Shown in pieces: positions 1,845 to 50,095 of a stretch of DNA of 64,000 bases; position 1 is the first letter of the stretch, and every line of letters begins with the position of its first letter. Origin of the DNA: Bugula neritina (taxonomy: Eukaryota; Animalia; Bryozoa); contig OZ037773.1 of NCBI GenBank assembly GCA_964035545.1, forward strand, positions 215,751 to 279,750, in the 5' to 3' direction. The translations under genes and the position numbers were made by a program. A model generated the notes under the pieces. That model was not told the origin of the DNA. It worked only from the letters and a program-made list of their open reading frames with translations, and did not search any database.

Positions 1845-4800
1845 CACTGAGCTGTTCTTCTAGAAAAGTAATGAATGACATTTCACCTAAAAATATTCAT
1901 GCAATGAGTGCATTAACAGAACTGAGCACACAGCTAACTGATGGCAGTAAATTAGTTTATTAATTAATCAAATATAAGTTAAACAATGAAAATAATTAAC
2001 CTAGCCCAGTTCAGAGCAGCATGTGTGAAATAATGAGTGAATTATAACTTACACTAACTTATCTTAAATAAATATAGACTTGATTATACTCACATCACCT
2101 CACCACTAGCATCCTACATGTTTTTATAATCTTTAATTGAAGAAAATGCAGAGAACCAAACAAAAAACGGAAGGATTACATATTTTGAGGCACTGAAATA
2201 AGTTTTGTAAATTATTCACAATTAATTGTGTATCAAGAGAGGCAACATCTCTAGGTGCCTATCAGTATATAGAGATTTGCGTAACACTGGAAAATTTTCA
2301 TGCCATAGGCTGATTAGGACACAAGAGTCTGCTTCTCATTGCACGATAAACCTAGAAAAAGTTCCTGGGAAATTAATGAGTTATGAGATGGTAGGTAGGA
2401 AAGCTTAAAAAGCTTTGGCCCCCTCTAGAGACAACCAGCTAAGCTTGAACAACTGTTCAAATTAAACAAGCTTTCAGTTTTTTATATAACATATGAAGCG
2501 CAAAAAAATTTTTATCTTCAAGTTTATCTATAACTCACTTAAAATTATTTATCAAACTGCATAGAAAGACCTAAGGCTCATGACTAAAAAGACAGTGTTT
2601 CGCATTATAGAATGTAGCATGTATTGCCTACTTAATAGCAATATGAATATTAAGCATTGAAAAATCACGTTCACTCTACTCATATATAGCAAGAATTTGT
2701 CTAAAATCCTCACAGTATGAAGCAATATAATTAGAAGGCTAATACTAATAGCAATACTGATAGTAATAGTAATTTATCAATTAAAAAATAGCCATAATTA
2801 AAGTTTGTATTTTATCAACTACTACTAGTACTACTAGTAGTAGTACTACTAGCAACATAACTTATCGATAAGCATTTCAATAATCGATAAGCATTTCAAC
2901 TGACAAAAAGCAAAAGCATGTTTTTAAAATCAGTATGACTATGAGAATGACTATGATAGTAAAATTATTATGATGGTCATGGCATTGAATTAATTATAAT
3001 TATTATTGAATCACTCAACCAGAAATGAGTAATGAACATCAACATGTAATATTTTAAAAATTAAATTTAACGATTATCATTATGATTATAACTATAACTA
3101 TAAGTTTAAGTATAACTATAAGATTTAATTTGCCAAAATCTAAATAATAAACAAGAATCAAAATTGTCAATTTTACATGATGATGATGATGATCAATTTT
3201 TCGTACTCATAATAATATATATAATTATTGAGCGATTTTAATTAAATGATTATTATTCATACTAAAATTCATATTTAATCATTTTTATAGTTATACTTGT
3301 TATATCGAGACATGGAGTTTAAAGTTGAAGTAACTGTAACACTAACTGTAAGTCAAAGTGTGTCTATTCAGCTTATCGATATAGCTGTCTGCTGGTAGGA
3401 CAATCACAATGACAGTCTTAAGACCAATACAGATACTGATAGTAATATGCAGACAGCCAATACCGTATGCCAGCCAATGTTAGCCACTAAATATAAATAG
3501 TAAATTACCATTATAACATACTTATAGTAATACTATAACTATAACTATTAGTATTAGTATTACTATTACTGTATTAGTATTAGTATTACATTAGTATAAG
3601 TATTAGTATTACTATTACTAATTTTTATTATCAATTAATGAATTATGGTTTATTATAATTATTTTAGTTAACGTCGATTTGTTACCAATTTTTATTTTAT
3701 TGTATATGTGTAATTTCATACTCAAACTTAAACTTCTAAATTAACTTGAAGACTTTTATTCTAAAACTTCAAATACTAGTAGAATTAAAACTAAAAGTAA
3801 AACTAAATGCAAAACAGAAACTCGAACTGTAAAACTAAAGGAAAAGGCAACGATGTTGTATCACGATTTTTACCTTAGTTGTAGTTGTCTCCTTTTAAAT
3901 ATTTTGTTTATGGAGGGTGCACAACTCCGTTTGGGTATCATAGTCAAAATAATTATTACATCAATAAAATATGTATGGATGGAACAGATATAAAACAGAT
4001 GTGTTTATGAGAGATTGAGGAGACTGAGTGGTTGAAGATTATGATTAAGAATTATGGACAGAGCAGAAAAGAAGTGTTTAAATACAATGATGCTCATTAC
4101 GATTATTTATAAACATTGTATTTCCAATGTTTTACTCTAATTATATTTTTTCAAGCGTGCTTTCCAAAATAACTAAGCTGTGCCATGTATATATTGGCAA
4201 TTGTTGCTAATTTTGTCTATTAAAAAAACTTTTTTGTTTTTGGTGTGCTTTCTTCCTTCTTATGGGCACTTTCAATGTATATTATACTTTCAGTTACCGA
4301 GTTTTGTCTTATGGTTTTTTTTATTTTCACTGTTTATGCTAAGTTTGTTTTATTAGACTTAGAGACTGATTGAAGAATTTGTGATAGTTCATTGCTCTAG
4401 ATATCAAAGGTCAACTTCAGATAGATCTATACAAGCCAAAACTGACTATTATGAATAACACAAGTAACACTGTGTAAACATTTATACATCAAGACAAGGC
4501 ATATTCAGCATATCATCAACACTGTTTAAAAAAGTTGACAAAAGTTTACATATTATAGGGTGGTTATATTCTTTAAAAGAAGCATTGTGTGATTGGTGAT
4601 CAATAGGTTAATAACTATATATGCCAGCTAATTTGATTGCATTATTTGCTCAGTTACAGCCTGCATAGTTTTTCTTTGTAAAATATTTTAAATGTGAATG
4701 GAACAGGAAAGCGTGCAGCAGCCATCACATGACCAGTAAATGCTTGTGCACATGCCGCATGTGTTTCATATAAATATTTTACTATTAGAATATAATCCAG

Positions 4801-5248: not shown

Positions 5249-8200
5249 TCATCCAACTAGCCAATAAAATTGAAACATGAAAATGAGGCTGACAGATGAT
5301 AACACTTTTGACATCGTGTTACATCTATCTCCTTTGCATGAACACTTCAGAGTCCTGCTCCGAATATTTGGTTCTCTGTAAATATCTGCATCTTTGTTGA
5401 GACACTCAGAGTTGTCATAGATGGAGCCACATGACCTTGTTACTGCAATAGTGATCAGTTAGAATAAATAAACGATTGTAGCCAGTGTACGTGTGCATTG
5501 TATGTGTGTCTGTGTGTACATGTATGAGTGTTCTCTTATGCTCTAAATTACTTACCACCGGTGGTCTTCACCCCGGAGATACGAGAAATCACTTTGAGTT
5601 TTGTGCAGCCACCATTTTCCAGAGTGTTAAATTTTTTGTCGCAAGAAACTTCGTGTTTTACATTTCCTTCGTAGGCATCGCCGCAGTCACTGTCATAACC
5701 TGTACACTCATAGCACACCGTGGCCTTAGCTCCTGCAGTGATGTATAAAATATATGTTTACAATTGTCCTTCTTGCCTTTAAAGAGTTAATTGTTACTGA
5801 CTAGCTTTTAGCTCTGAACTTCATCACTACAGTTATAGGAACCTAACACCCCATAATTATTAGTTGAGCATTTATGAAACTTGCCCCCAGTCGCTATATA
5901 GTAGTATAGTATTAATTTTATTCACTAGCTCTGCAGAGAAGGCACAACTACAAACTGAGCATATTAACTACAACAATATACAAAGGTGTGGCCTGTGTGA
6001 TAGTTATGAATAGCTTGATAGGAGAGTATACAGGTGATAGAGAGAGTGTATTTATCTACAGAAAGATAGTATAGAGTGAGTATATAGAGAGAGTATATAG
6101 AGAGAGTATATAGAGAGAGTATATATAGAGAGAGTATATAGAGAGAGTGTGTATAGATATAGTATAGAGAGTATATATATAGAGAGTATATAGAGAGTAT
6201 ATAGAGTGAGTATATAGATGGTATATAGAGTGAGTATATATAGAGAGAGTATGTAGAGAGAGTATAGAGAGAGTATATAGAGTGAGTATATAGAGAGAGT
6301 ATATATAGAGAGAGAGTATATAGAGAGAGTGTGTATAGATATAGTATTGAGAGTATATATATAGAGAGTATATAGAGAGTATATAGAGTGAGTATATAGA
6401 TGGTATATAGAGTGAGTATATATAGAGAGAGTATGTAGAGAGAGTATAGAGAGAGTATATAGAGTGAGTATATAGAGAGAGTATATAGAGAGAGTATATA
6501 GAGAGAGTATATAGAGAGAGAGTATATAGAGAGAGTATATATAGAGAGTATATAGACGGTATATAGAGAGAGTATATAGACGGTATATAGTGAGTATATA
6601 GAGAGAGTATATAGAGAGAGTATATAGAGAGAGTATATAGAGAGAGAGTATATAGAGAGAGTATATATAGAGAGTATATAGATGGTATATAGAGAGAGTA
6701 TATATAGAGAGAGTATATAGAGAGAGTATATATAAAGAGTATATAGAGAGAGAGTATATAGACGGTATATAGAGTGAGTATATAGAGAGAGTATATAGAG
6801 AGAGTATATAGAGAGAGTATATAGAGAGAGAGAGTATATATAGAGAGTATATAGAGTGAGTATATAGACGGTATATAGAGTGAGTATATAGAGAGAGTAT
6901 ATAGAGAGAGTATATAGAGAGAGTATATAGAGAGAGAGTATATAGAGAGAGTATATATATAGAGAGTATATATAGAGAGTATATAGAGAGAGTATATATA
7001 GAGAGAGTATATAGAGAGAGTATAGGGAGAGAGAGTATATAGAGAGAGTATATAGAGAGAGAGTATAGAGAGAGAGTATATATAGAGAGTATATAGAGAG
7101 TATATAGAGAGAGAGTATATAGAGTGTATATAGAGAGAGTATATAGAGTGTATAGAGAGAGTATATAGAGTGAGTATATAGACGGTATATAGAGGGTATA
7201 TAGGGAGAGTGTGTATATCTACAAAGAGATAGTTTAGAGTGAGTATAGAGGGTATATAAAGAGAATGTGCAACAAAAGAGAGATTTTTAATAGATAATTT
7301 AGGAATGCTGCTACATCTAGAGACTAGAAATGGCCTATTCTACTATTAGGCTGTTATACCTTGTGCATAGCTGATACACTCACACTGTACGTGTCAGAAG
7401 ATTTTGTTTTTTATAGTTATAACATGAATAACATAGTTCTCTCTCACATATGTTCTTAGTAGTGAGTATAGCAATAGACAGGTTAACATAGCAGCTTGTA
7501 TGTAATGCTGTCAAACATTAATTAGTTAGCTCCTAGGTAATCAGTAGCAAACTAATTGAAGACAATACATATAGCTTGACAGTCAATACCAGCTACTCTA
7601 GCTACAATGATGACAGGGACAATAACAGCTACAAATAATGAAAGACTATCTGCTATTAATATTACATATTGCTCTATGCAGGACTAATTATGCAACATGA
7701 TACACATTAGCATAGCTCTTCACTGCTGTCCCGAATTCTGATATTGGATAACAAGTGCATACACATAGACATGCATAACATGAAACCCCCAGCTTGGTAG
7801 TCCCATATCAAAGGCTCACTCTGCTTGCTATCTCTCGTTTTGGATATAATGTATATCCACTGATGAGATGATTAGAAGATTGATTAGACTTAGAATTGAA
7901 AGAGAGAGACAGCAAGTGAACAGTGAGATAAAGATTCTCAGACTAGACAGCCACCAGAATACCTGGTTACTTAAACCAGAATAAGCTAACATTCCATCAA
8001 TGCTATTTGTTTGCAGTTAGAATCATCAAGTTAAAGTAGCCGAGCGAGAAGTTAATTATTTTGGGCTTAACAACATTGTTTGAAGTAGTTATAAGGATGT
8101 TTTAAAGTGCTTAGCCTAGGAACCTAGACATATACCCTGACCTGGAGGTTCAACCTTCCTTACAGATTCAGTTAGGGACTCGAGCTAATCTCATATAGCC

Positions 8201-12879: not shown

Positions 12880-15800
12880 CTACTGTTGTGAGCAAGACGG
12901 ACCATGACCATGCATACCGTCCATTTCATCATCTTCACTGTCGTCATAATGTGCTGAATGGAAGCCATGATACCCAGGGAAGCCTGGTGGATAGCCATGG
13001 AAATGCTGCAACACAAGAAGTCATTATAGTAATACTGATAAGGAAGTAGTAGTGATACTGATAAGGAAGTAGTAGTGATACTGATAAGGAAGTAGTAGTG
13101 ATACTGATAAGGAAGTAGTAGTGATATTGATAAGGAAGTAGTAGTGATACTGATAAGGAAGTAGTAGTGATATTGATAAGGAAGTAGTAGTAATACTGAT
13201 AAGGAAGTAGTAGTGATACTGATAAGGAAGTAGTAGTGATACTGATAAGGAAGCAGTTAAAAGCAGCCGATAGCTACGTCTCGAAACTAACCGGGTGCCG
13301 CTGCTGCCGCTGCCTTCTACGTGACTCATCGTAGTCAACAAGCGGTACTTCCTCTGCTATCCCAGAATGCATCACATCAACTCGCTTGGGTAAAGATTTT
13401 TCTAGAAGCTAAAAATTTGACAAGAATTAGAGGTGATGATGTCCAAACCTCTAGCACATTATAATCCATACAGTAATCATCAAAAGAGCTCATTGTAGAG
13501 ATTCAACGACCTGTAAGTCAACCTGTATATAGTTTTGCATTTAACAAAGGACGTTTATGACGCAAACTCCAAGAGAACAAAATTGAATAGACAGTATTGG
13601 AGCCGTCAGGAGTCAGAGTCGTCCAACAACATATACGATGACCAAGAATAACTGTCCCTTCTCCAAACTAAAACTTCCCCCTAAATAAAAAAAAAACATA
13701 AATACCTTCAACTTTCTTTCCGGGAGGTAGTTTGGTGGAGGAAAGGCGACAGTAAACTTGATGAGGAGTTGACCCTTGTTGAAAGGGTTCCTGTGTTGAG
13801 GCATGCCTTCACCTGTGATAGCACGGAGGGCGTTGTGTGGCACCACTTTACCTGAGATTAAGAAGCAAAAGCATTTAGACATCCACTAGAAAAGTGCATT
13901 AAGGGATCACAAAAGCATTTCAGATGCATTTCTACTCTCTAGCAACCATTAATATAGGAAATGCCAAAATAATGATGATGAGAAGGAAACTGGAGATGAG
14001 TCAGACATACCAGGAGGGGATTCAATGAGTAGCACCCTTTTATCTAACGTCTTGATGGTCTTCTTAAACCCTATCAATGATTCTGTGATATTGATCTCCA
14101 TGTCCATAGCCAGGTCTGAAAGTATGTAACAGGAAGATACTACTGCTGCCGCTGCTACTACTACTACCACTACCACCACTACTACTGCTACTACTACCAC
14201 CACTACTACCACTACTACCACTACTACCACTAGTACTACTACTACTGCTGCTGCTACTACTGCTACTACTACTACTACCAATACTGCTGCTACTACTACT
14301 ACTACTACTGCTACTACTACCACTGCCACTACTACTACTACTACTGCTGCTGCTACTACTACGACTACTACTGCTGCTACTACTAATACTACCACTACTG
14401 CTACTATTACTACTACTTGCTGCTTACACTAACCTAACTCCTGTCTCTTGAACACTTTGTGAGGCAGCTCGTGTAGGATTACGAGAATGTCACCAGGTTC
14501 TATTCCGGGTTCCTGATCTCCTTCGCCATGGAAGGTGATTTGGTCGCCATCTTTCATTCCTACATTGATATAAGTAAAAGCTGTCACTACGCGCTTATTA
14601 CTAGTCACTAGTCTACATGACAGTGAGTAATAGACTGCAATTATTGCAGACTTGTAATGAGTTGGGTAAAACATAGATTTACGATTAGGGTACGAAGTAA
14701 ACTAACAGATGAAAAATTGTGTAATAACAGGCATTACAAAACCACAAGGTAAGACAACTGTTTCAGTGTAAGCAGTGAATGTGTCCAATTTAATGTGAAG
14801 TGAAAAATAAAGAATTATTATTAAACTAGGTATGAATTTTGTTTATTTTCACAGACATCTAGACCTACCTTTATCAATGTGAACTTCCAACACTTTCTTT
14901 TCACCAACAACTTTTTTGGAGTTACAGTCCTTGCACGCATACTGTGGGTCTACTATTTCCCCTCGACCTCTACAGTCCTTGCACATTCCCTGCGTCTGCT
15001 GCATCATCCCTAAACCGATCTGCGGTGGTAAACAGATTATTCAATACATAATATATTAGAATACTATGTATAACCTAATATATACAATGTATTGAAGTAC
15101 TATGTATTATTACCTAATAAATAATATGCAACATCAGACTGAAGTGGTAACAGACAGTCCCACCTACCTGCTGAAGTTTAACTTGTATACCAGTTCCCTT
15201 ACAGCTGTAGCATTTCTGTACGGCACCTTCTTTAGTACCACCAGTACCTACACATTTACACATAGGCTCAATGTCAAGGTCAAATTCACTATTGTAGTTT
15301 CTTTGGATAAATGTGTGCAATATATATGAGCAACAATCACGTACCTTCGCACCCTTTACAGATCACATTTTTATTCGCAGCAATTTTCTTCACAGTACCA
15401 TTATACAGGTCTTCTAGCGTTACCTGCAGTGAAATGCAGTTCCAGATCAAATGAGTAGAAAGTGACATCAGCAATTTATAGTAACTTTCAGTACACACGT
15501 AACCAGCACAACTTACACTATACAAGTAATGTACACTACACAAGCAACCTACACTAACTAAAGTGACTTACACAACACGAGTGACTTACACAACACGAGT
15601 GACTTACACAAAACAAGTGACTTACACAACACGAGTAACTTACACTACAGGAGTAACTTGTACAACAAATGAAATATAAACACAAAAACCTAAACACATT
15701 TATTGTTTGGTTTGAAAACCAGGTGATTGTTAACTCAAAGTGATTTTCGGGGAGACTTAATTGACAATTAGACAATTACAACTTCTAACTAACGTCATTT

Positions 15801-16989
15801 CAGCTGATATTTGATAAGACTTTATATCTTTCAGGCAGTAAAACTGTGTACTGGAGACGCGTCACGAGTCTCTCTCTCTCGAAGTAGATACTGCATCACC
15901 CACCTTCAGCTGATGCTTGGTACTCCTGCCCTTGCGAGGACCTTGACTTTGCTGCCTCCTCCCTCCACTTCCACCAAAGAACATTTCAAAGATATCCATT
16001 GGCGAATGGAAAGCTCCGTCACCACCTGAAATATGCGGCTACAGCAATGAGACCAGCTGGTGTAGAATACCTCTACATATACCCCCTACCTGCATATACC
16101 CCCTACCTGCATATACCCTCTACCTACATATACCCTTTACATATACCCCCTACCTACATATACCCCCTACCTACATATTCCCGCTACTTGCATATAACTT
16201 CTACCTGCACATATACCTTCTACCTGCATATACCCCCTACAGACATATACCCTGCCCCTACCTGCATATACTCTTTAAAAGCATGTACCCCTTACCTGCG
16301 CCCTCTCTGATAGCCTTCTCCCCGCCTTCATCGTACAACTTTCTTTTATCATGGTCGGCTAATACCTCGTATGCCTGACTGATCAGTTTGAACTGTAAGC
16401 ACACACAGCAAGTATTAATATTTAAAAGAAATTCACAGGTTTAGGCTAACATTTTAAAAAAATTGAATAAAAAAACTGAAAAACATAAAACAAAATGCTG
16501 AAAGGACTTTCTATATAATTCCACTGTTACTATTTCACTGTTACTATTCCACTGTTACTATTCCACTGTTACTATTCCACTGTTACTATTCCACTGTTAC
16601 TATTCCACTGTTACTATTCCACTGTTACTATTCCACTGTTACTATTCCACTGTTACTATTCCACTGTTACTATTCCACTGTTACTATTCCACTGTTACTA
16701 TTCCACTGTTACTATTCCACTGTTACTATTCCACTGTTACTATTCCACTGTTACTATTCCACTGCTACTATTCCACTGTTACTATTCCACTGCTACTATT
16801 CCACTGCTACTATTCCACTGCTACTATTCCACTGCTACTATTACTGACCTGCTCAGCCTTCTCTTCGTCATCAGGGTTTTTGTCGGGATGGAGTTTTAGT
16901 GCTAATTTACGATAGGCTTTCTTTAGCTCAGAGTCGCTGGCAGAGGTACCGACCCCCAGCAGGTCGTAGTATTTAGTTTCCTTCACCAT
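12880..16989 (-). CDS. DNAJA1: DnaJ subfamily A (type I Hsp40, DNAJA1/2/4-like), 429 aa
   Basis: 11 in-phase exons: 16989-16849, 16392-16296, 16025-15904, 15423-15345, 15247-15168, 15019-14869, 14559-14434, 14115-14011, 13851-13706, 13408-13292, 13005-12880. It has a J domain [13 protein letters not shown]...LHPDKNP, a G/F region ([12 protein letters not shown]), CxxCxGxG zinc repeats, a C-terminal domain ([20 protein letters not shown]) and the CaaX end CSQQ*. The paralog assignment within DNAJA is uncertain. Confidence 0.93.
13025..13253. repeat. 23-bp minisatellite x~10, last intron of DNAJA
   Basis: AGTAGTAGTGATACTGATAAGGA in tandem. Confidence 0.95.
14138..14417. repeat. (ACT/ACC/GCT)n trinucleotide tract filling a DNAJA intron
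   Basis: Source of the spurious poly-Val ORF 13949..14395. Confidence 0.95.
16068..16300. repeat. Degenerate 17-bp repeat containing copies of the DNAJA exon-2 donor
   Basis: TACCTGCATATACCCCC units; the - strand reads GCAG|GTAGGGGGTATAT versus the real donor GCAG|GTAAGGGGTACAT. Confidence 0.85.
16519..16843. repeat. 14-bp minisatellite (TTCCACTGTTACTA) x~23, abutting the donor of DNAJA coding exon 1
   Basis: Directly visible; a T>C variant is clustered at one end. Confidence 0.95.
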
Positions 16990-19519
16990 CGTCTAATCTG
17001 TATAGTCTAAAACATATTTCAGTTTTATCCTATGTCAGAAATGAGAATTTCATAAACACAGAAAATCATAATTTCTATCCCGTAACTACATGGAAAAGGA
17101 CAAAAAAACTCAACAGTTTAAGGCCTTAAATTTAGCTATGTATACAGCAAAGAGAAACTGAAAAAATCTGCAGCTTCTGAGTTACAATAGCAATTATGAA
17201 AAGAAATATAAGACTGAATTATTCATACTGAAACCAACAGCTCATACTGATGCTTTTATTCCAATGTTAAACTAAAGCAATAGCAGTTAGAATTACAGCA
17301 GACACAAAGTTGTTACTCAACACTAAAGTTTATAAGAGCCTGATTTATGAAGCGAAAATAAAAACGTGCATATGAATCATTAATTATCAAATATAGATAC
17401 CAGAACTCAGTGTTATTCAATAAACAAAAACCAACTGCTTTCAACTAACCACAAATCTATAACAGATCTACTGATCTCACTACCAACAACAAAAATTATT
17501 CTATTTGAATTGATGACATATAAATTTCAATACTATTCAATAGGCCAAACTGGTTACCTAATTGGTATTGTCAAAGTTTCAATAACTAAATTGGAAGTAA
17601 AATATTTGTGAAACTCATTCCTCAAACTAATTGAGTATCACAATTGCCGAGTTTCAGCTAAAATGTGAGTTCAAATACAGTAATAAAATATTAGCAGCAT
17701 GTTTAGGCCTGCTACTAAAAGATATAACTACAATACATAACCCAATAAACAATAATTATCGATTATTGAGTAAACCATAGACAGAGTTCGGGGGTGCATA
17801 CTGATCTTGCGCCTACGTGTAATTTAAATAGTTTAGGTAAGACTTGGGGCTAGTCACCATATCTAGTAAAAGTATCAGAATCAGTGAGAGTTGAGTATTA
17901 GTACGAGTACTGGCAATAGTATGCTATGCATTAGTATTATGATTATCACTTTCACTATGACTCATCACTGACAAGCGGTTAGTGATAACTATGCTAGGAG
18001 CATGTGTCACTTCAAGCCGACATTTATCTATAAATATCATCGAAATTATAAATATAACACTATTAAAGCAATAACGTAATATTTATGTAATCATAGTAAT
18101 TAGTACTACTATTGTCTTTGGGTTAATTTTAGTAACAACTCTAAGGTTTTTTCCATAGACCTGTCACTAAAACTGTGTAATACTTGTGTAATACTGAATT
18201 GAATAGTAATAAGTAATAAATAATACCGCATAGGTAAATAAGTAAAAATATTAAATAAATAATAACTAAATAACCATAAACCATTGAAAATATATATGAG
18301 ACAACCACTATCACTTATTAGAGTAGCAGACAGTTGGCATTAATATCGGCAGAGAAGAATGTTCACTACAACAGCTTCTTTTGAACAATATGAGACTTGA
18401 GAATAAATATAATAACAAAATCAGCAATGTGTCATATCCACAGTAATGTATAAAGGGATGCATTTAACTTGCACATTTTGTGATAATTAGATGTTCTATG
18501 GACATAGAGTGGGTAGAGTGAGAGTATGACCATAACTAACAGCAATGTGATAGCGATACTGTGTTAGTGATTACTCATTAGACATTGAATGCCTAATGAG
18601 AAATGACTAACTTAGCCTCACTACCATGTATAGTTAAAACTATTACGATGAGTATGAGGACATAAGTATGTATGACTATCTTTATTACTATTAGAAATGC
18701 TACATTGGTAAATTATATTCCTAAATTTACAGCTAGTGTTACAGTTTTAATAGCAACACTAACTGTAAGTTGATGAGTATAATTTATTATTAGTATTACT
18801 ATTTACTGATTTCACGATTAAAATGACCACTATGTTAAAATGCATATTCTAATAGTAATACTAATAGTAATACTATTATCATTACCATTAAACTTAGTAT
18901 CTAATATCTATCATTTATAATTATATCAATATTCATATTAATATTATAAGTATAAATCATTATGATCATCATTATGATTATGATTAAGTTCAACGAGCAT
19001 CCGATTTAGTATAAGTATTACTTATCTGATTTACTTCCAGTACGAGTATGGCATTGACTATCAGTATGAGTATCACTATGACTATCAGTGTCACTATGAG
19101 TTAAACTTGAAGCATAACTAAGTATTACTATTAGTATTAGTATAAGTAATCCGAGAGGTCTTGGGACTTAACCCAATCAAGATCAAGATCAAGTATGACT
19201 TATTTATTATAAAATATCCTCCTTAATTTTAAAAGTAGTAGTAGTACTAAGAGTAAGAGCAAGACTAATCCTAAGAGAAAGACTAAGAGAAAGAGTTAGA
19301 GTAAGTTTTGTTGTTGAACTGCAAGAGTCTCAATCTGAATCTGCAATTTTACTTTCACTTTGTCTTTTACTTTAACTTTAAGGAAATGCAGTTTCAGTTT
19401 GAGTTTGTATTTGAAGAATAAAAATACTTTAAGTTTATTATCGGTTAAAGTTGAAAACAAAGTTTTGTAAGTTTACAGTATTATTAAATTCAGTATTATA
19501 CAACATAGTTTTGAGGAAC

Positions 19520-19930
19520 CCTTTCCCTTTGACCTAGTCATATGGCCTATGGGTTATGACTCGATGTGAACGAGTGACTACGCAATGAAATAAAACTGAT
19601 TACACAATGGTCGCAACTATACACGCTATCGTAAGCCGCTATAGCCAGAGTGGTATACACCACACTGCTATAGCCAGCGTGATGTAGGAAAAACAAAGAG
19701 GAGATAACTCTATGCTGAAAGTTTTTCCTCTTCAGTTTCTGGAATCATTATGTTCTTTTCAACTACAATTATTGTAGCAAGCAAAACTAATAAAAATGAA
19801 TATATTTACAAATTCAGATTTAAAAAATAAAAAAGGTATAATAAAGCTATGAAAAAAACATAATCCTGAGCGGTGACACGGCATGTCGTAGCGAGTAAAA
19901 TTATTTTCTGTTTTTCAGACTCACGTAAAT
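19520..19930. promoter_or_regulatory. Probable bidirectional promoter region shared by DNAJA (-) and SRP54 (+)
   Basis: The genes diverge and each has a splice acceptor just 5' of its ATG (17007 on -, 22992 on +), so both have upstream non-coding exons. This block is the CpG-richer, non-periodic island between the two periodic tracts, with candidate donors at 19895 and 19925. The TSS positions are inferred. Confidence 0.45.
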
Positions 19931-21329
19931 AATAATCCTACTGACTTGAAACTCATGACAATCATCATGATCTTTATACATTATGATTATCATTATATTA
20001 TTCTTATAATATTGTTCATACCCATATTGGTTTTGAATGGGTTGTTATTGATGTCTAAATTGTCATTTGTAAAGGTTGCTCATTATCTTTTGCACTTAGA
20101 GCTAGTCTTACACTTACAGTTTGACTTTCACTTGCTCATGCTGGCAGTGGCTTACACTTACAGTTACTGTTAGTGTTACGCTTGCAGTTGCTCATATTGA
20201 TATTGATATTCATAGTCATAGTGGTAGTGATAGTCTGTTAGTCATTCTTATTTTAATTCTTATTATGATTTTCATACTCATAGCCATAGTCATAGTGATA
20301 GTATTATTTTTATTATTATTATTAATATTATTATAAAATTATCTTTAAGTTTAACTTCAAGTTTAAGTATACTAAATTTAATACAACTACATAATGATTA
20401 TCATATTCATATCGATATTCAATTTTATATTTATATTCATATTGAAAGTGATATTGATATTAATTAATTTAAAAAATAGTAGTTTGATTTTAATTTGCTT
20501 TTAGTTTTAGTTAAACTTCGAGTTAAATTTAATCACAATGAACAATCAAATATCATAATCAAAATGGTGAAATTAACAACATAGCTTAAAGCTTAAACTA
20601 TCACTATGACCCTAAGAGTATAACTGAAAGTGCTTTTACTCACTTAGGAGCGGTAGTATACTGGTAAGTCATCAGATAAGTGGGGTATGCCATGTAACAT
20701 GTCTAAGAGCAAAATAATTTATACTAATACTATACAAAATCCTTCGGTGTTTCACTGAAGCTAGGTTAAAGGTTCTATAAGCATTTATCAAAGGAAATAT
20801 TAGATACTAGAAAATGTTTAGGTAAAGGTAAAAAAGCTATCTACAGGGTTCTTGATAAAGCGCAATTGATTGCATACAAAGCATTGCGTCTACTGCACCT
20901 TGGGACCCAACCTGCAAGAAGGCTATTTATGACTTGAAACAAATACAAGTAGATCATATACAACTTGTAGCCAGTATCAATCTTGAAAGCGCCATGAAGA
21001 AACTTTAGCTACAGTCCCCTGAATAAAAAAAAACTAAACGTCTTAATTTTCTTTTGAAAAATTTTGGCAAAGAAGGAAAATATCTGGCGCTCAGCTCTGC
21101 TTATGATGATATGATTAGTTGCTGCACAAGCCAACCAACATTACTATACAAACTCGCTTCCAAGCAAGGGGGGGGGGAGCAGTTTCGATCATTCAGGCTA
21201 ACAATACCAAGTATCTCAACAGCTTTCTCTTGAAAACTATCTGAAATTTAAAGAAATCTCACACAGGTTTATAGTCGCCATCCCTGTGAGAAACCCCTGA
21301 TGGAAAGGGGTTTTTTATTAAATCAAGCT

Positions 21330-21471
21330 AAGGATTCATTTAGATGGGTCACAGAAGCAATTACGACTGGATGCTCTTTTTAACATTACCAATGGCCTTT
21401 TTTTCCGGGGTTTGAACTCATGACTTCGTGTCTACTAAGCAAACGCTTTAACCCTTAAACCACGGCTGCGC
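21330..21471 (-). mobile_element. tRNA-derived SINE head plus conserved body segment (Meta-domain-like)
   Basis: The - strand reads GGCGCAGCCG TGGTTTAAGGG (A-box-like) ... GAGTTCAAACC (B box), followed by CATTGGTAATGTTAAAAAGAGCATCCAGTCGTAA. This resembles the GGAAGGGCATCCGGCCGTAA core of invertebrate tRNA-SINEs. The 3' boundary is uncertain. Confidence 0.6.
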
Positions 21472-23031
21472 CCAACTATCAGGGATTTGAAGATTGGTTT
21501 AAATCAACCCAATAACTCAGAGATCTCTACATAGACAAAATTAAGTTCCTGTTTAGTCACTTCAACTCAGCATGTATTAACTGTATGACTATTGTCAAAT
21601 GACTGCCCAATTTATTACCCATATGCAGCACATCCTTTCTTCCTTTTATACTGTTTCAGTGTGATGATCACTTTGAGCAATTTAAATTTAGTAAGTCCAA
21701 GTAAAGTTAAAATAACTAGGAATTTACTTTAAATTTAATTCAACTAATACTAATCTAAACTCTGAACTTAATCTGATGTCACTCTCAACTTGATAACATT
21801 ACATATGAAATAAAATATAATTATACTAGTAGTTGTATAAAATTGAAAATTATTTCAACTAGACGCGACACTCACAAGTCACAATTGCACTTAGTCTCAT
21901 TCTTGGATTTGGTAGCTTCTAATTACTGTTAGTGATAGACTTAGTGTTAAACTTAAAGTGAATACTATTATTACGTCAAACAGCGTTAGCGCCTAGTCTT
22001 AGACTTAGAGCTTGTTTTATCAATTACACTTGCGAATATCAGGTCTCCTAGCTACAGTAACTGGCAATTCGTATGTTTACATTCGCGAAATTTTTTCTGT
22101 CACATTATATTCCATTTTTTGACTGGTAGACGATCGGGTTTTGCTCTTCTGAAATTCATGAAATCTTCACCACTACCAATTGCCAAAATCAGATAATCAT
22201 TTGTTTTTCTTATGTTCTCCTTCTACTATCTTCTTGCAGTCACTGAAAATACTTGTCTCTTGCATCATGCACTAGTTGCTGCCTTTTCTATTATTGTAGT
22301 CATATTTCCTAATGGGAAGTATCTGATCTTGCCTTTAACAACTCACATACCAGTTTCAAGATCCTGTTATTGTTATCACCTATTTGTTTTCTCAATCCCT
22401 TTGTCACTGTGAGGTGCTCCTCTAATTAGGCTCTTTGTAAATTTTTCTTCCTATGTAAGCTGCCGAGCTGCATTTTGCAGGCCATTGTCATTCTTAGTCT
22501 GCTAGTTTCTTTCTCTTAACATACAGTCTGGTAACTTTTGGTGTGGGTTGAGTGCTCATTGCAATTACTTTCCTTGTGTTTCCATTTATCTCTTTTCAGC
22601 TCATTAACCTTTCAGCTGTAACTTCAATTGTTTGATATAATAATATATTAAAGGTTACCTGCTAACAGCTGATTTCCTTGTTCTATATGTTTAAGTTTTA
22701 TCATTCATTTAGAATTTCAATTTTCAAAATATTTGAATCTTGGCATATTGTAAATGTAGCCCGAGACTACATAAACTGTACTGAGCATTTCCACCCAGTT
22801 TCAGGTACTAAATTATCAGCTTAAAAGTAGAACTACGTACATAGTTTGATTTTGACCATATTTGTTGATCGTTGTTGGTAGTGTCATTAACTGTTTTTAG
22901 GAGCCTTGAAAATATATGTGGCTATGAAGTCCAGTAGATTGCTTTCTTAAATATTAATGATACAAGTCTTGTACAAGTTTATAGATTTTTAGGTTAGATT
23001 TTTCACAAACTGAGTCCAAGTTGGAGCATAA

Positions 23032-28850
<5,819 letters not shown>

Positions 28851-38913: not shown

Positions 38914-39812
38914 ATAAATTGAATGGGTAGCGCAGAATATACTATTGAGGAGTGAGGACTAAGCAAATAACCATTCATAATAATTATAGATTGATAAAAA
39001 TTACTACAGATAAAATTATATCCTATAGAGTTATCTTTCTCTGTGCAGGTACCGCTGCATGGATAAAAATGTATGCAACATAATTATTATAGAGTTTGCT
39101 TTCTCTGTGCAGGTATTACTGCATGGAAGCAACACCGACTCGGAATGACTAGAAGCACAGTATTCGTATACACATCGTCTTTACCACTGAACTGAAACTA
39201 TAACTATAATTATAGTTCAATGGTCTTTACCACTGAGCTTATCGAGTTCATTGGCCTTTACTCCAAATTAGGAAACGTTGGCTTTATGCAACCCCCAATT
39301 CAGTGCTGTTTCTAGTCACTATCAATAATCGCAAATTTTACTTTCTGCTCTTCAATATTTTTCAACCCGTTTTACGTTCTCACGTGAGTTCTCCTGTCAC
39401 TGAACAAAGATTGTTGCCGCTAAACCTTTTGAAGTTAAAAAGGCGGGTCAAATAAAACTAAAAGTATCTCAAGGAACAAAGTGAAAGCTTTTGATTACGA
39501 TCGCAGTGGCTCTAGCTGTTGATAACATAGCAATTACTGTAGCTCACACCATGACATAATGATGATAATTCAATGGCTCACACACTCACAGGTGTCAATG
39601 GACGTAACACGTGTGTAAATGTAATCATCTTAGATTTTAACATTAGTAGTAGTACAACTACTAGCATTAGCAGTACCACCAGTACTAGTAGTAGTAGTCC
39701 TAGAGTCTAGACCGAGACTGAATGTAAACAAATTGAAATAGAATTTGATATTTGATTTTTTCATCAATTTTATAAAATTAAATATATAATTATGATATAG
39801 TAATTTATAATC

Positions 39813-42800
39813 ATGAAACTAAAGAAATTGTACAGAGATGAGTATCGAGATGTAGTAGATTCAATTACCTCTTTCAAGGAGTTACCGTTGGTCATGGATC
39901 ATCTAAAACAAAACTTTTCACAGTAAGTATTCTGTTAAATATTGAACTGTTGTATTTTTAATTTTTCTAGTTCTATAGAGTTGGTGTTACTTTTGCTTTA
40001 GCACAGAACCCCTGAAAGTGAAAACTTAAAAATACTAAGGAAACTGTAAACGTTTCCGTTTTAATTTTATTGTTAATTAATATTTTCACCACTACAAATA
40101 TAATTAACATTATAAGTATAACTTTCGTTTATAAAATTAAGTAATTTAGTATTAGAATGAAACTAGTCACTACAATAAATATAATACCCATACTGAAAGT
40201 AACTATAATAATAAGCCTATGGCCGAGTTAGTAATATGAATATTGAATATGAATATCTGAATATGAATATGGGTTGGATTCAGTCAAAACAATTCCATTA
40301 GTAAATTACTACATTTTAGTTTATGTTGATAGTATTAATTGAATCAGATAAGTCTATTGAACATAACTATAATTTTTGTTGTCAATTGACCATTCAAACT
40401 TGGTAGCTCAATTTGAAAATGGCATTTATGCACTATGGTTATGCTGAGCTTTTACTTTTAGGTTTGAACTTGACATTGATGAATGAAGTAAGGAGTAATG
40501 ATAGCTATAATAATAATAATTTCTGGTGTGCTTATAATTGGATTACATTTATTCCTTGAGTATTTAATGATTCACTATTTATTATTTTATGAATTTCATT
40601 ATGATTGTCTTGGAGCTTCTTAAACTAAAATTGCTCCGACTGTGTAATACTGACTTTATTAGAAATATAATATTGTTGTAGTTTTATGCACTACTCAAGT
40701 GGGGTATTATTGTATACAAGAATTACTGCTGCATGTATTACTACGAGATTGCGAGAGAAGTTGAAGTAGTTGACATTTATAACAGATTTATGTCTAATTA
40801 GCCTAAGTACAAAGAAAATTATCAATGATCATAAAAGTACACATATGGAACAGTTACGCAATATTATCCTAGTCTACATGACAGGTATTCTCCAACTGCG
40901 ACTGGGCCCTGGGAGGGTTGGCTCTGATTGGCCGGTGGGGGTTCTGGTGGTGCTACCATATGGAGTTATAATCTCTTGGAACTTTTATAATGACTTTCAT
41001 AATATAATACAATGTCACGACTTCTACTGCAGGTAGCCTACTTATACATGGGAGGTTTGGGGGTAGGCCTATACCTCCCACAGCCACTACAATATTCATA
41101 TTGACATTACATATATACCCAAGCATCACATTTAAGTTTGATGATTACATTATTGCTATTACTATCACAACCCTTGTAGTTGAGTAATGAAACTATGGTC
41201 ATCCGTATATCTGAAATCATCATGGGAGGAGAAACAGTTAATTTTGGCATTTTTAACTTTGTGTTGTAATATGTGGTTAGACACAAAAGTTTAGAGTGAG
41301 ATGAAGATTTATATGTTGGATTTCAACTGCTTGTATGCTATTCTCAAGACTTTGGTTTGAATTTCTGTAGTATCAATGAAAAGACGCTATGGAGCATTCA
41401 CAATACAAGCTATAAAAACAGGATGAAAAAAAGAACCCCATTATTAAAGTCAGAATCAGCTTTCATCCATGAAATCTATATTCCGTAAGTAGTACCTCTT
41501 TTCTCATAATAAACACTCAGCACACCTGCAACAAGTGGCTTTATGTGTTTCAATTTCTATGGCTTAAATTTTGTCAGGTTATAAGGGCAAAGCCATTTGC
41601 AAAATCAAAATTACTTAATAAATACTTCTGCGGTGCAGCAATACAACTTCCAGGGTCTACGTGCCCTTGTAGCAAAGTAAATTGTTAAATACATTCATCA
41701 GGAGGTAATGGTTATCAGGAAATCTTTAAAAAAAGTGTAAAATTTAAAGTTTTAAATGTAATCAATAAAGTATGGATCCCTTTAGCTAATCTATATATTC
41801 TTGTCATGATTACACATAAAAACTGCAGCAAATGATGTTTATCAGTGTGAAACTTTAAACTGTTTTTATAGGTACTGTGAACAAGCGGCCAAAGATTGCA
41901 CGACTTTGCTGCGAATATCACAGCAGGTATAAGACTATATAATACCAAACTAGTGACAAGTAATATTATATATTGCTAAAAGATATGACAGATAATATTT
42001 TATATGCTACTGAACTATATGGTGCTAGAATTCTACAACTGGTTTCTGTGCCTACCCCTGTCATTGCTGAGTTTGTGCTCTGCAGGTGGACATTTCCCCA
42101 GCTCTGGTTGCTAAGCGACTGCTTGAATACATGCTGACCACCCAGTCAGTAACCACTCAGTCAGTATCCACTCAGTCAGTATCCACTCAGTCAGTATCCA
42201 CTCAGTCAGTATCCACCCAGTCAGTATCCACTCAGCCCGTATCCACTCATCCAGTATCCACCCAGCCAGTATCCACTCATCCAGTATTCACTCAGCCAGT
42301 ATCCACTCAGTCAGTATCCACCCAGCCAGTAGCCACTCATCCAGTATCCACTCAGTCAGTATCCACCCAGTCAGTAACCACTCAGTCAGTATCCACTCAG
42401 TCAGTGTCCACTCAGTCAGTATCCACTCAGCCAGTAACCACTCAGTCAGTATCCACTCGTCTGACTTCTACCAGTCAACTTCTGCACCACCCAGACTTCA
42501 CTGACTGCACAAAAAGTGCTGAACTGCCTGGAACTTCTGCAGTCCAGCAAGAGACGTGTGAAGTCAACACCGCACCTATTAGCTCATTTCCTGTGACCGC
42601 AGAGAAAGAGTTTGACCTGCCAAATGCTACACCATTTCACTCAGTACATCCAATGGTTGATGGTGTACAGGGTGAAGGTCAAAGGGTTGATGGAAGCTCA
42701 GTGTCTTCTTTATGTCTTCTGAACCAGTATCTGTTACTTAATCAGGTTTGTTTGTAGACTATTTCTCAACATGTCAGTTTTGTTGTTAAGTTTTACATCT

Positions 42801-45800
42801 ATATATAAGCATTACCACAGTTACATTTGTCACCATGCCAATGGACTGAGTATATAAGACATATAACTATCATCCAGTAAACTGAAGTTACTTCTTGTAG
42901 CCAGGGATCTTGTTTGGTCACAATAGATCTGCCTCAACCTTCCAGTCCCTCTCAACAAGTGCATACATTTTCTTTGTTTATTGAAACTCTACTATGTCTA
43001 TTTCGTCATACAGATGACTGCTAGTTGGGAGGTGGGGCTAGCATCTACACAGTTGTTATTCACTGCTCAGCTCTCCGTCTATACTGGCAAGCATTGCCAG
43101 AAGTTTGAAGGTGTGTTTATTCTATTGGTTTATACTCTCTATATACTCTCTCTATAAAGTCGTATTTTCTCTCTATACTCTCTCTATATATATACTCTCT
43201 ATACTTTTGTATACTCTCTCTATACTTTCTCTATATACTCTTTCTATATACTCTCTCTCTATATACTCTCTCTATATACTCTCTCTATATACTCTCTCTA
43301 TATACTCTCTCTCTATATACTCTCTCTATATATACTCTCTCTATATATACTCTCTCTATATACACTCTCTATATACTCTCTCTATATACTCTCTCTCTAT
43401 ATACTCTCTCTATACACTCTCTATTTACTCTCTCTATATACTCTCTCTCTATATACTCTCTCTATATACTCTCTCTATATACTCTCTCTATATACTCTCT
43501 CTATATACTCTCTCTATATACTCTCTCTATATACTCTCTCTATATACTCTCTCTCTATATACTTTCTCTATATACTCTCTCTATATACTCTCTCTATACA
43601 CTCTCTCCCCATATACTCTCTCTCTCTATATACTCTCTATATATACTCTCTCTCTATACACTCTCTCTATATACACACTCTCTCTATATACTCTCTCTAT
43701 ATACTCTCTATATATACTCTCTCTATATATACTTTCTATATATATACTCTCTCTATATACTCTCTCTATATACTCTCTCTATATACTCTCTCTATATACT
43801 CTCTCTATATACTCTCTCTATATACTCTCTCTCTATATACTTTCTCTATATACTCTCTCTATATACTCTCTCTATATACTCTCTCCCCATATACTCTCTC
43901 TCTCTATATACTCTCTATATATACTCTCTCTCTATACACTCTCTCTATATACACACTCTCTCTATATACTCTCTCTATATACTCTCTCTATATACTCTCT
44001 CTATATACTCTCTCTATATACTCTCTCTCTATATACTTTCTCTATATACTCTCTCTATATACTCTCTCTATACACTCTCTATATATACTCTCTCTATATA
44101 CTCTCTCTATACACTCTCTATATACTCTCTATATATACTCTCTCTATATATACTTTCTATATATATACTCTCTCTATATACTCTCTATATACTCTCTCTA
44201 TATATACTCTCTATATACACACTCTCTCTATATACTCTCCCTATATACTCTCTCTATATACTCTCTATATATATACTCTCTCTATATACTCTCTCTATAT
44301 ACTCTCTCTCTATATACTCTCTCTATATACTCTCTCTCTATATACTCTCCCTATATACTCTCTATATATACTCTCTCTATATACTCTCTCTCTATACTCT
44401 CTCTATATACTCTCTATATATACTCTCTCTATATACTCTCTCTCTATATACTCTCTCTATATATACTCTCTCTATATACTCCCTCTATATACTCTCTCTA
44501 TATACTCTCTCTATATACTCTCTCTATATATACTCTCTCCATATACTCTCTCTCTATATACTCTCTCTATATACTCTCTCTCTATATACTCTCCCTATAT
44601 ACTCTCTATATATACTCTCTCTATATACTCTCTCTCTCTATACTCTCTCTATATACTCTCTATATATACTCTCTCTATATACTCTCTCTCTATATACTCT
44701 CTCTATATATACTCTCTCTATATACTCCCTCTATATACTCTCTCTATATACTCTCTCTATATACTCTCTCTATATATACTCTCTCTATATACTCTCTCTA
44801 TATACTCTCTCTATATACTCTCTCTCTATATACTTTCTCTATATACTCTCTCTATATACTCTCTCTATATACTCTCTCTCTATATACTTTCTCTATATAC
44901 TCTCCCTATATACTCTCTATATATACTCTCTCTATATACTCTCTCTCTCTATACTCTCTCTATATACTCTCTCTCTATATACTCTCTCTATATATACTCT
45001 CTCTATATACTCCCTCTATATACTCTCTCTATATACTCTCTCTATATACTCTCTCTATATACTCTCTCTATATACTCTCTCTAAATACTCTCTCTATATA
45101 CTCTCTCTATATATACTCTCTATATACTCTCTCTATATACTCTCTCTATATATACTCTCTCTATATACTCTCTCTATATACTCACTCTCTATATACTCTC
45201 TCTATATACTCTCTCTATATACTCTCTCTATATACTCTCTCTATATACTCTCTCTATATACTCTCTCCCTATATACTCTCTATATATACTCTCTCTATAT
45301 ACTCTCTCTCTATATACTCTCTCTATATATACTCTCTCTATATACTCTCTCTATATACTCACTCTATATACTCTCTCCATATACTCTCTCTATATACTCT
45401 CTCTATATACTCTCTCTATATACTCTCTCTATATACTCTCTCTATATACTCTGTCTATACACTCTCCCTATATACTCTCTATATATACTTTCTATATATA
45501 TACTCTCTCTATATACTCTCTATATATACTCTCTCTATATATACTCTCTCTATATATACTTTCTATATATATACTCTCTCTATATACTCTCTATATACTC
45601 TCTCTATATATACTCTCTATATATATACTCTCTCTATATACTCTCTATATACTCTCTATATATACTCTCTATATATATACTCTCTCTATATACTCTCTCT
45701 ATATACTCTCTCTATATATATACTCTTGTATACTTTTTATACTCTTGTATATTTATGATGTTAGGAAGTGGGAGGAGCAAAGCGGCTGCCAAAGAAAAAG

Positions 45801-48800: not shown

Positions 48801-50095
48801 ATTACTAGTTATACTATGAGTATGTTACTAGTTATACTATGAGTATATTACTAGTTATACTATGAGTATGTTACTAGTTATACTATGAGTATATTACTAG
48901 TTATACTATGAGTATGTTACTAGTTATACTATGAGTATGTTACTAGTTATACTATGAGTATATTACTAGTTATACTATGAGTATGTTACTAGTTATACTA
49001 TGAGTATGTTACTAGTTATACTATGAGTATGTTACTAGTTATACTATGAGTATGTTACTAGTTATACTATGAGTATGTTACTAGTTATACTATGAGTATA
49101 TTACTAGTTATACTATGAGTATGTTACTAGTTATACTATGAGTATATTACTAGTTATACTACGAGTATGTTACCAGTTATACTATGAGTATGTTACTAGT
49201 TATACTATGAGTATATTACTAGTTATACTATGAGTATGTTACTAGTTATACTATGAGTATATTACTAGTTATACTATGAGTATGTTACTAGTTATACTAT
49301 GAGTATATTACTAGTTATACTATGAGTATGTTACTAGTTATACTATGAGTATATTACTAGTTATACTATGAGTATGTTACCAGTTATACTATGAGTATGT
49401 TACTAGTTATACTATGAGTATATTACTAGTTATACTATGAGTATGTTACTAGTTATACTATGAGTATATTACTAGTTATACTATGAGTATATTACTAGTT
49501 ATACTATGAGTATGTTACTAGTTATACTATGAGTATATTACTAGTTATACTATGAGTATGTTACTAGTTATACTATGAGTATATTACTAGTTATACTATG
49601 AGTATATTACTAGTTATACTATGAGTATGTTACTAGTTATACTATGTGTATGATATGGGTAACTTGTAAGTTAGAAGTTTCGATCAACTTCTAACAGGCT
49701 TAACTTCATCTAAAACATTTCATTGATTTATTTTATGATGAATTTTGATAGTTCTGTGTGATGGTCTCTCGTGCATAGTCTTATCACCTTTTCTATAATA
49801 TATAATATCGCCCAATACTCTGACATCTTTTGTTATTTACAATGCTTATATTTTCTATTATTTTATGACATGCCCAGAGCTGATATTTACATGCATTGTA
49901 TTGTGGTATATTTTTCCTGTATTTGCCTTGTACTAGTTTCTGAATAGGTACAATGTGCTCTGTAGGTTTGGACCAGGTATGGTGATATATTGGTTTGGTT
50001 ACGTTACAGAAATGGAAAATATGTCTGAAGGAATCCTATTGGCTCACTCGTTCCCTCATAACCTTGAGACGCTTAATTCCTGCAGCTCCAGCTAA
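39813..50095 (+). CDS. CDIN1: CDAN1-interacting nuclease 1 (C15orf41) ortholog with an inserted TQ-repeat region and dsRNA-binding domain, 576 aa
   Basis: 10 in-phase exons: 39813-39922, 41371-41484, 41872-41926, 42086-42745, 43014-43110, 45765-45894, 46874-46941, 47045-47239, 47743-47914, 49966-50095. Conserved blocks: [31 protein letters not shown]...DDQYGP...[20 protein letters not shown]...[12 protein letters not shown]...[19 protein letters not shown] (PD-(D/E)xK core). Confidence 0.9.
42140..42454 (+). repeat. 15-bp in-frame repeat x21 encoding T[QH][SP]V[ST]
   Basis: ACTCAGTCAGTATCC units within the open exon 42086-42745. Confidence 0.95.
43130..45725. repeat. (CT)n-TATATA compound microsatellite, ~2.6 kb, in the intron splitting the dsRBD
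   Basis: TATATACTCTCTC units; reverse complement of the 6065-7260 family. Confidence 0.97.
46035..46860. repeat. 45-bp minisatellite x~18 in a CDIN1 intron
   Basis: TATACTATACTATATGTTATACTACATACTACACAGTTACTGTGT; contains the hairpin ACACAG-TTA-CTGTGT. Confidence 0.95.
47997..49647. repeat. 23-bp minisatellite, ~1.65 kb (~70 copies), in the last CDIN1 intron
   Basis: ACTAGTTATACTATGAGTAT(G/A)TT in tandem. Confidence 0.97.

Follow-up and report, generated by a model that had tools for sequence, protein, structure and literature searches.

Both sides of the presumed divergent promoter region of DNAJA and SRP54 in Bugula neritina are flanked by tracts of DNA in which each six-base unit resembles its neighbors while the motif drifts. 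We analyzed these tracts in a window of 64,000 nucleotides (assembly GCA_964035545.1, contig OZ037773.1, positions 215,751 to 279,750), and we found that they belong to a genome-wide class of AT-rich (~27% G+C) degenerate tandem-repeat DNA. The tracts share one lattice, A-S-T-A-W-T, which is self-complementary; the similarity between units extends over only a few units; and the variation between units is unusual, as it is dominated by exchanges between G and C. The explanation that we favor, which we give about an even chance of being correct, is that in-register slippage, assisted by hairpins, yields a class of repeats that flanks promoters.

To quantify periodicity, we used the lag identity, which is the share of bases that match the base n positions on, and we compared it with the values at neighboring lags. 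The z-scores for segments are from 300 dinucleotide-preserving shuffles each. The lag-6 identity is 0.43 at 17880-19500, 0.55 at 19940-20650, and 0.42 at 21650-22030, as compared to 0.26-0.30 at lags 4, 5, 7, and 8, and to a lag-6 identity of 0.31 for the whole window. A preliminary description of this DNA had placed kilobase tracts of drifting hexamers in these three stretches. The strings that it quoted begin where it put them (TAAGAG from 19248 and CTTACA from 20151), and the two stretches on the SRP54 side are periodic as described, with the second being the weaker. The left stretch is also periodic, but it is not a continuous tract of 1.6 kb; rather, it is a small patch plus a core of 0.8 kb. 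The weak outlying patch is at 17880-18150 (lag-6 identity of 0.40 versus 0.27 at neighboring lags; z = 3.9). It is followed by a segment that has no lag-6 periodicity in the shuffle test (18150-18600, z = 0.9), and then by the left core tract, on the DNAJA side, at 18600-19440 (0.51 versus 0.27; z = 14.1). Our tract caller placed this core at 18679-19433, with 6 as the best lag. The right core tract, on the SRP54 side, is at 19940-20600 (0.56 versus 0.29; z = 14.0; 19951-20577 according to the tract caller). Between the two cores lies an island at 19434-19950, the presumed divergent promoter region, which is not periodic (z = 1.8 for 19440-19940), so the tracts do stop at the island, as previously described. 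To the right of the right core, the lag-6 excess is absent at 20600-21650 in the shuffle test (z = -0.5). This non-periodic DNA, which includes a very high-copy short repeat, separates the right core from the weaker patch at 21650-22030 (0.42 versus 0.29; z = 5.3). We treat the tracts, the patches, and the island as features without a strand.

In these kilobase-long tracts, Tandem Repeats Finder reports only short patches of period 6, with 3-15 copies and 66-86% matches. Given that these patches are short and that the lag-6 identity is only ~0.5, we can rule out a microsatellite or other short tandem repeat with a fixed unit. As the preliminary description proposed, the period of six persists while the motif wanders. 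A decayed trinucleotide repeat is also very unlikely: the identity at lag 3 is well below the identity at lag 6, both at this locus (0.33 versus 0.43-0.55) and when pooled across the 40 tracts that are described below (0.34 versus 0.50). With z-scores of 14 in the cores and similarity that fades with distance, these tracts are cryptically simple, or degenerate, tandem-repeat DNA.

To see how widespread the tracts are, we examined other parts of the 216 Mb genome, whose 321 contigs include at least nine at chromosome scale, using the large contigs only. Some of the small contigs (such as C101, C110, C66, C126, and C127) contain intronless genes for Ras and myosin-head proteins with many in-frame TAA or TAG codons and almost no TGA. 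Since this codon usage resembles the genetic code of ciliates, the assembly is probably contaminated with ciliate DNA in these contigs, and we therefore excluded the small contigs. For each of 20 genes (loci L001-L020), we considered the 10 kb that surround the first exon of the Ras domain; together with the window, this amounts to 264 kb. At least one tract with a best lag of 6 was found 1-5 kb upstream of the first coding exon in 16 of the 20 Ras-family genes. The 36 tracts at the Ras loci have a median length of 550 bp and a maximum of 1,488 bp. Combined with the tracts from the window, this gave a set of 40 tracts (21 loci and 24.2 kb). The window itself contains two more tracts of the same class, at 2705-3850 (lag-6 identity of 0.49 versus 0.29, best lag 6) and at 40005-40265. 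The latter has a weaker extension from ~39450 and adjoins a stretch at 39050-39550 that is not depleted in CpG. Overall, tracts cover 5% of the window.

A strict version of the lattice, the 24-base pattern (ASTAWT)x4, is found 11,438 + 11,373 times in the whole genome (~22,800), as compared to 812 + 843 (~1,650) for a control with the pattern written backwards. Also, in one DNA sequencing run, which confirmed the sequence piecewise, words from the tracts were matched by contigs from elsewhere with depths of up to 89,520, versus a baseline of ~136. Despite this abundance, the tracts are unlikely to derive from a dispersed transposon or satellite family. When we compared the 500-bp flanks of the 40 tracts, all against all, the only hits across loci were of low complexity (23-128 bases, with most under 50). 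Similarly, the matches of the tracts elsewhere in the genome (60-170 bp at 69-93% identity) reflect low-complexity similarity only. The preliminary description had named a known repeat family and a decayed trinucleotide repeat as the alternatives to check, along with a comparison of lag 6 to other lags; the absence of shared flanks and the far lower identity at lag 3 speak against these alternatives.

To describe the motif that the tracts have in common, we fit a cyclic hidden Markov model with six states to all of the tracts. This identified one common lattice, with a gain of 0.09 bit per base; models with a period of 5 or 7 had gains of 0.000. The emissions of the six states are A (.70); N (C.30, G.29, T.25, A.16); T (.67); A (.51); W (T.49, A.34); and T (.46). 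In other words, the lattice is A-S-T-A-W-T, or (ANT)(AWT), which is its own reverse complement, and it is common to all 40 tracts. Because of this symmetry, orientation is carried only by the position of the W. Using ASTA versus TAST as a marker of orientation gave a weak signal only. ACT/AGT is more common in the tracts than in the non-tract DNA beside them (observed/expected of 2.14 versus 1.12), and so are CTA/TAG, GTA/TAC, and TCA/TGA, whereas AAA/TTT and purine runs are depleted. Runs of five or more A or T are 2.5-7 times rarer in tracts than in other DNA of matched G+C. The stability of the duplex is nearly equal to that of matched DNA, with a difference of 0.01-0.02 kcal per step. Words from the lattice also appear in a satellite at 47983-49652, which has 72.6 copies of a 23-bp unit (95% matches). 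Its monomer is itself periodic in hexamers (0.43 at lag 6 and 0.41 at lag 12) and is made of AGTA, ACTA, and TACT words, as if it had been amplified from hexamer-lattice DNA.

The order within the tracts is of short range. Across the 40 tracts, the pooled identity at lags 6, 12, 18, 24, 30, and 36 is 0.50, 0.41, 0.375, 0.353, 0.336, and 0.327, and it has fallen to the baseline (0.31) by around lag 48. The excess at multiples of six falls geometrically, with a correlation length of ~5 units. This decay implies local order, as would arise if each unit were copied from a neighbor with changes, and not a long-range lattice. The tracts also contain short, near-perfect arrays with periods of 6, 12, 18, and 24.

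The preliminary description viewed successive units as differing by edits of one or two nucleotides. These are not ordinary point changes: they are mostly exchanges between G and C at A_T and T_A sites on the lattice. Pairs of G and C at lag 6 are 1.8 times as common as expected from the composition, while all other classes of mismatches are at 0.6-0.7 times the expectation, and there is no bias towards transitions. Whether G or C is retained at lag 6 depends on the flanking bases. Within A_T, it was the same in 319 cases and swapped in 394, and within T_A, it was the same in 213 and swapped in 214, which is a coin flip or a slight alternation. In contrast, within A_A and T_T, it was the same in 78 cases versus 11 and in 60 versus 8, or 88% the same. 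For G/C with self-complementary flanks, the agreement stays at about 50% at lags 12-36, whereas A/T centers with self-complementary flanks are 76% the same between neighboring units (52% expected). Neighboring units from the whole genome behave similarly: we counted 6,185 AGTAAT-AGTAAT, 10,294 AGTAAT-ACTAAT, 12,760 ACTAAT-AGTAAT, and 7,492 ACTAAT-ACTAAT, so that G/C is swapped in 63% of these pairs. The W base was retained in 87% of neighboring units (36,731 versus 5,277). This rule, with G/C free or alternating only if the flanks are self-complementary and with A/T inherited, offers a clean, quantitative criterion for distinguishing between models, and it could be checked in any related genome.

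We considered two simple sources for the G/C exchange. Inversion of units is ruled out because the outer, non-palindromic context is retained (67 TTAGTAT versus 65 TTACTAT); also, A/T centers within the same flanks keep their memory. A deaminase-type process that converts C to G is disfavored, as there is no excess of transitions and as the exchange affects A_T and T_A sites but spares A_A and T_T, a dependence on context that is unlike that of a single-strand enzyme. Other tandem arrays in the window, with periods of 3-53, vary in another way: the differences between their units are mostly transitions, and just 8 of 586 are between G and C. The window includes long, pure trinucleotide arrays of the ANT class at 14155-14417, which is (CTA)88, and at 63360-63776, which is (TAC)139; unlike in the hexamer tracts, the differences between their copies are mostly transitions. 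There is also a 5.2-kb array at 56070-61264 with 199 copies of a 26-bp unit. Finally, long arrays of one 13-bp unit (TATAGAGAGAGTA and its complement) lie 36 kb apart in opposite orientations, at 6070-7210 and 43168-45718, with extreme G/C skew.

The alternation at the S position has consequences for self-pairing. Because AGTA is the reverse complement of TACT, a lattice with alternating S becomes a quasi-palindrome of 12 bases. Judging from the lattice itself, a single strand can pair with itself at ~10 of 12 positions with alternation, as compared to 4 of 6 without. Consistent with this, both core tracts have better predicted folds than their own shuffles do (z = -4.30 for the right core and z = -3.05 for the left core, on the DNAJA-sense strand). 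Across 90 windows from tracts, the mean z-score for folding was -0.84, and 20% were below -2. AT-rich windows outside of tracts had a mean of -0.05, with 3% below -2 (P = 6e-5). The alternation of G and C is thus predicted to raise the hairpin potential.

Are the tracts linked to promoters, as the preliminary description proposed? The same layout is found at other genes, and three proxies (position, skew switches, and CpG content) agree in suggesting that tracts are tied to transcription starts, although none of the three is decisive and the starts are themselves located by sequence proxies. At the 20 Ras loci, the share of DNA in tracts is 7-9% between -8 and -5 kb relative to the first coding exon and rises to 13-26% between -5 and -1 kb, where it peaks (26% between -4 and -3 kb). 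It drops to 6% in the 1 kb directly before the exon; of the two 1-kb bins downstream of the exon's start, the first has 4% and the second 0%. The nearest upstream tract has more T than A on the sense strand of the gene at 15 of 16 loci. The right core tract fits this pattern, with 0.44 T versus 0.32 A on the plus strand, which is the sense strand of SRP54. As a proxy for divergent transcription, we looked for the switch from A to T skew, with the tracts masked. A tract lies within 500 bp of the switch at 7 of 12 loci (P = 0.03, permutation test) and within 700 bp at 9 of 12 loci (P = 0.004).

The CpG content points in the same direction. Across the window and the 20 Ras loci, CpG o/e is 0.41, with rare islands of 400-1,200 bp at 0.8-1.0. 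This pattern of global depletion with islands is vertebrate-like, and the CpG-undepleted islands are probably unmethylated promoters. The island between DNAJA and SRP54 has 14 CpG and an o/e of 0.98, and the A/T skew reverses its sign within it. Seven loci have a tract-island-tract layout; their seven gaps between paired tracts are 380-770 bp long, with CpG o/e of 0.74-1.07, as compared to a median of 0.38 for 500-bp windows. CpG islands are found within 300 bp of a tract more often than after circular shifts, with P = 0.056, 0.04, and 0.007 as the threshold for o/e rises. Taken over all tracts, CpG density in the first 400 bp outside the edges is weakly raised (P = 0.06). A search of the gaps between paired tracts for common 8-mers yielded AT-rich words and no promoter motif. 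Within the window, drifting hexamers are absent from the internal introns of DNAJA and SRP54 and from the other stretches that are AT-rich; the arrays found there have periods of 13-53 bp. The extra loci were all anchored at the 5' ends of genes, so the control for gene bodies is the 64-kb window.

The first coding exon of DNAJA, which encodes the J domain, is at 16810-16989 on the minus strand (open reading frame with ATG at 16989; PF00226 matches at C9:232599-232724, which is 16849-16974 in the window). An acceptor-like AG is directly upstream of it. A look-up of the exact protein sequence of this exon, aimed at other assemblies, had no hits. A translation scan placed the first coding exon of SRP54 at 23047-23125 on the plus strand (ATG at 23047), with an acceptor-like AG upstream and a GT donor after it. 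Since both of these exons are preceded by acceptor-like sequence, each gene probably has a 5'-UTR intron, or else an outron for trans-splicing, that extends towards the island. The tracts would then occupy the upstream flank as well as these introns or outrons. At 23168-23332, shortly after the first coding exon of SRP54, there are 3.1 copies of a 53-bp unit (98% matches). The very high-copy short interspersed repeat is at 21232-21600, between the right core tract and the patch at 21650-22030. In one public DNA run, the depth of contigs was 255,115 at 21232-21415 and 11,510 at 21416-21599, versus a baseline of ~136. By eye, this repeat has a tRNA-like stretch on the minus strand; ARAGORN does not call a tRNA. 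Outside of the tracts, at 17568, a contig from the sequencing run has an insertion of 14 bases relative to the assembly, which may be a difference between haplotypes.

We propose that local in-register duplications of 6 bases (and also of 12, 18, or 24) generate the tracts and keep reshuffling them, through either slippage during replication or unequal exchange. This type of process is suggested by the fading of similarity within a few units, by the near-perfect arrays inside the tracts, and by the inheritance of rare variants and of the W base. If G and C alternate at the S position, then AGTA could pair with TACT, and a single strand could fold into long, imperfect hairpins that would stabilize slipped intermediates. 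Units that form hairpins may slip more easily, as happens in other expandable repeats, and this lattice may have been favored for that reason; this would explain its self-complementarity, the G/C alternation, and the folding scores. The tracts would build up next to short CpG-undepleted islands located 1-5 kb before the first coding exons, within the 0.2-1.5 kb to one side of an island or to both. In summary, our analysis shows the periodicity, the shared lattice, the short correlation length, the unusual variation, the self-complementarity, and the abundance across the genome; from these, we infer that slippage is the generator, that hairpins are the reason for the lattice, and that the promoter is the place.

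Several observations weigh against this explanation. In the contigs from one DNA read set, we found no length variants of 6 nt in the tracts, so no slippage event was seen. The statistics for the association are modest (P = 0.06 for CpG in the flanks, and P = 0.056 to 0.007 for islands, depending on the threshold), the extra DNA is all from the 5' ends of genes, and the unselected control is the 64-kb window, of which 5% is covered. Hairpin-assisted slippage alone does not account for G/C lacking positive memory at any lag while A/T has it, and it gives no reason for the tracts to gather at promoters. Also, a constraint on the double helix, which implies selection, fits the G/C rule at least as well. 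The candidates for the memoryless G/C are a constraint on the identity of double-stranded trinucleotides combined with turnover at the S site, or short template switches. The gathering at promoter islands could be due to open or supercoiled DNA that favors slippage, to repair associated with recombination, or to selection.

A different explanation, which we consider possible but clearly less likely than slippage, is that the tracts are selected: they would be mechanical or chromatin elements, encoded in the sequence, whose lattice is kept for what its helix does beside unmethylated promoter islands. The proposed traits of the helix are TA steps every 3 bp, the absence of A/T runs, and dyad-symmetric ACTA-W-TAGT units that could extrude hairpins or cruciforms. 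Potential roles include absorbing supercoiling, organizing or excluding nucleosomes, or forming a barrier to methylation or silencing, which would make the tracts analogs of the periodic A/T clusters (PATCs) of nematodes in function but not in sequence. The G/C rule is as predicted if double-stranded trinucleotides are constrained, because swapping AGT for ACT or TGA for TCA preserves the trinucleotide, while swapping G and C in AGA or ACA does not. G and C persist at their positions in DNA with 27% G+C, even though repeats elsewhere in the window vary mostly by transitions. Selection could also explain why unrelated loci have one lattice, why A/T runs are depleted at matched G+C, and why the tracts adjoin CpG-undepleted islands, and PATCs are a precedent for mechanics that are encoded in sequence (PMC4947018; bioRxiv 10.64898/2026.08.08.743475). 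But AAT/ATT is also a single double-stranded trinucleotide, and yet the memory of A/T is kept (76-87%). A period of 6 bp is off the helical repeat, so it does not give intrinsic curvature, and the duplex stability barely differs from that of matched DNA. A correlation of ~5 units, with the phase being lost along the tract, is hard to square with selection for a long-range lattice. Furthermore, the evidence for selection consists of sequence features. A more specific version, in which the lattice is a dyad-rich, TA-step-rich, and homopolymer-free mechanical element that flanks unmethylated islands on both sides, for instance as a buffer for supercoils or as a barrier to methylation or silencing, seems a bit less likely still. 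In that version, the lattice would act via extrusion of hairpins or cruciforms, torsional softness, or unusual nucleosomes, and slippage-prone repeats would have given rise to it independently, as a counterpart of PATCs with a period of 6. If the link to promoters holds across the genome, then the tracts may be a second independent example, after PATCs, of non-coding DNA that acts through mechanics instead of through protein motifs.

It is also unlikely, to about the same degree as that specific version, that the tracts have no link to promoters and are just the commonest simple DNA of long AT-rich non-coding stretches, which happen to lie near the starts of genes. In favor of this view, tandem arrays with many different periods abound in the window, the extra loci were all picked at the 5' ends of genes, and the tests of association are only modestly significant. 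Four of the 20 Ras genes do not have a tract, and some tracts are several kb from any CpG island. On the other hand, this view does not explain why the internal introns of DNAJA and SRP54 and other AT-rich stretches have arrays of 13-53 bp units but lack drifting hexamers, why coverage is highest at -5 to -1 kb and falls off towards and past the start of the exon, why seven loci share the tract-island-tract layout with CpG-undepleted gaps, or why T exceeds A on the sense strand in 15 of the 16 nearest tracts. Least probable of all, and by a wide margin in our view, is that the tracts come from a dispersed repeat family, as fragments of a transposon or satellite with an internal hexamer array, or that they are a decayed perfect tri- or hexanucleotide microsatellite. 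There are pure (CTA)n and (TAC)n arrays in the window (14155-14417 and 63360-63776), and PATCs reportedly arose from minisatellites of Helitrons (bioRxiv 10.64898/2026.08.08.743475). However, the flanks lack homology across loci beyond low-complexity hits, the matches in the genome are short and of low complexity, lag 3 is far below lag 6, and the variation is unlike the transition-dominated decay of the other arrays in the window.

Even if the tracts are neutral, they would record an unusual, context-bound process for generating repeats that is concentrated at the starts of genes. If the link to promoters holds genome-wide, then the flanks of many promoter islands are marked by a specific and readily recognized lattice. 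This would allow promoters to be found from sequence in an unannotated genome, and it would provide a natural system for studying the interplay of repeat dynamics, hairpin-forming DNA, and transcription.

The preliminary description knew of no report of such tracts, and our search of the literature likewise found no description of a 6-bp lattice with reverse-complement symmetry, of its rule for G/C alternation, or of such tracts flanking promoter islands. Among the closest known classes are cryptically simple sequence, which Tautz, Trick, and Dover reportedly described in 1986, and degenerate or compound microsatellites made by slippage. As in these classes, related short motifs are over-represented locally without a fixed unit, nearby units are more alike, and an origin by slippage is natural. 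Unlike these classes, the tracts of Bugula have one symmetric hexamer lattice across the genome, reach 1.5 kb, and adjoin promoter-like islands, and their G/C is free or alternating at one site while the other sites are inherited.

Tandem repeats are also known from the promoters of yeast. More broadly, tandem repeats are enriched at the starts of genes (Sawaya et al. 2013, PMC3566118), which is similar to the apparent concentration of the tracts there. But promoter-proximal short tandem repeats are mostly short, have a fixed unit, lie within promoters, and are often G+C-rich in humans, whereas the tracts of Bugula are kilobase-scale, AT-rich, and drifting, and they flank the island.

The PATCs of Caenorhabditis elegans are periodic, AT-rich, non-coding DNA that is tied to genes and introns and is proposed to act mechanically (PMC4947018; bioRxiv 10.64898/2026.08.08.743475). 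They reportedly arise from minisatellites that are reshaped by transcription-coupled mutation (bioRxiv 10.64898/2026.08.08.743475). Like PATCs, the tracts of Bugula are an abundant, non-coding, periodic, AT-rich, and gene-associated class. The preliminary description drew this analogy, but it fails at the level of sequence. PATCs have a 10-bp period of A/T runs that gives curvature, while the tracts have a period of 6 and are depleted in runs of A5+ or T5+ (by 2.5-7 times relative to matched DNA). The 40 pooled tracts have no PATC-like signal near 10 bp, as the identities at lags 10 and 11 (0.287 and 0.270) are at background. PATCs are also linked to germline-expressed genes and to protection from silencing.

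Finally, expandable triplet repeats and palindromic AT-rich repeats have self-complementary units, and the folding of their single strands favors slippage and instability. The tracts share the self-complementary units and, as predicted from the lattice, folds that may favor slippage. Those known repeats are single loci with either a fixed unit or one large palindrome. In Bugula, a degenerate lattice with 4-bp arms (AGTA/TACT) every 6 bp is spread across thousands of loci.

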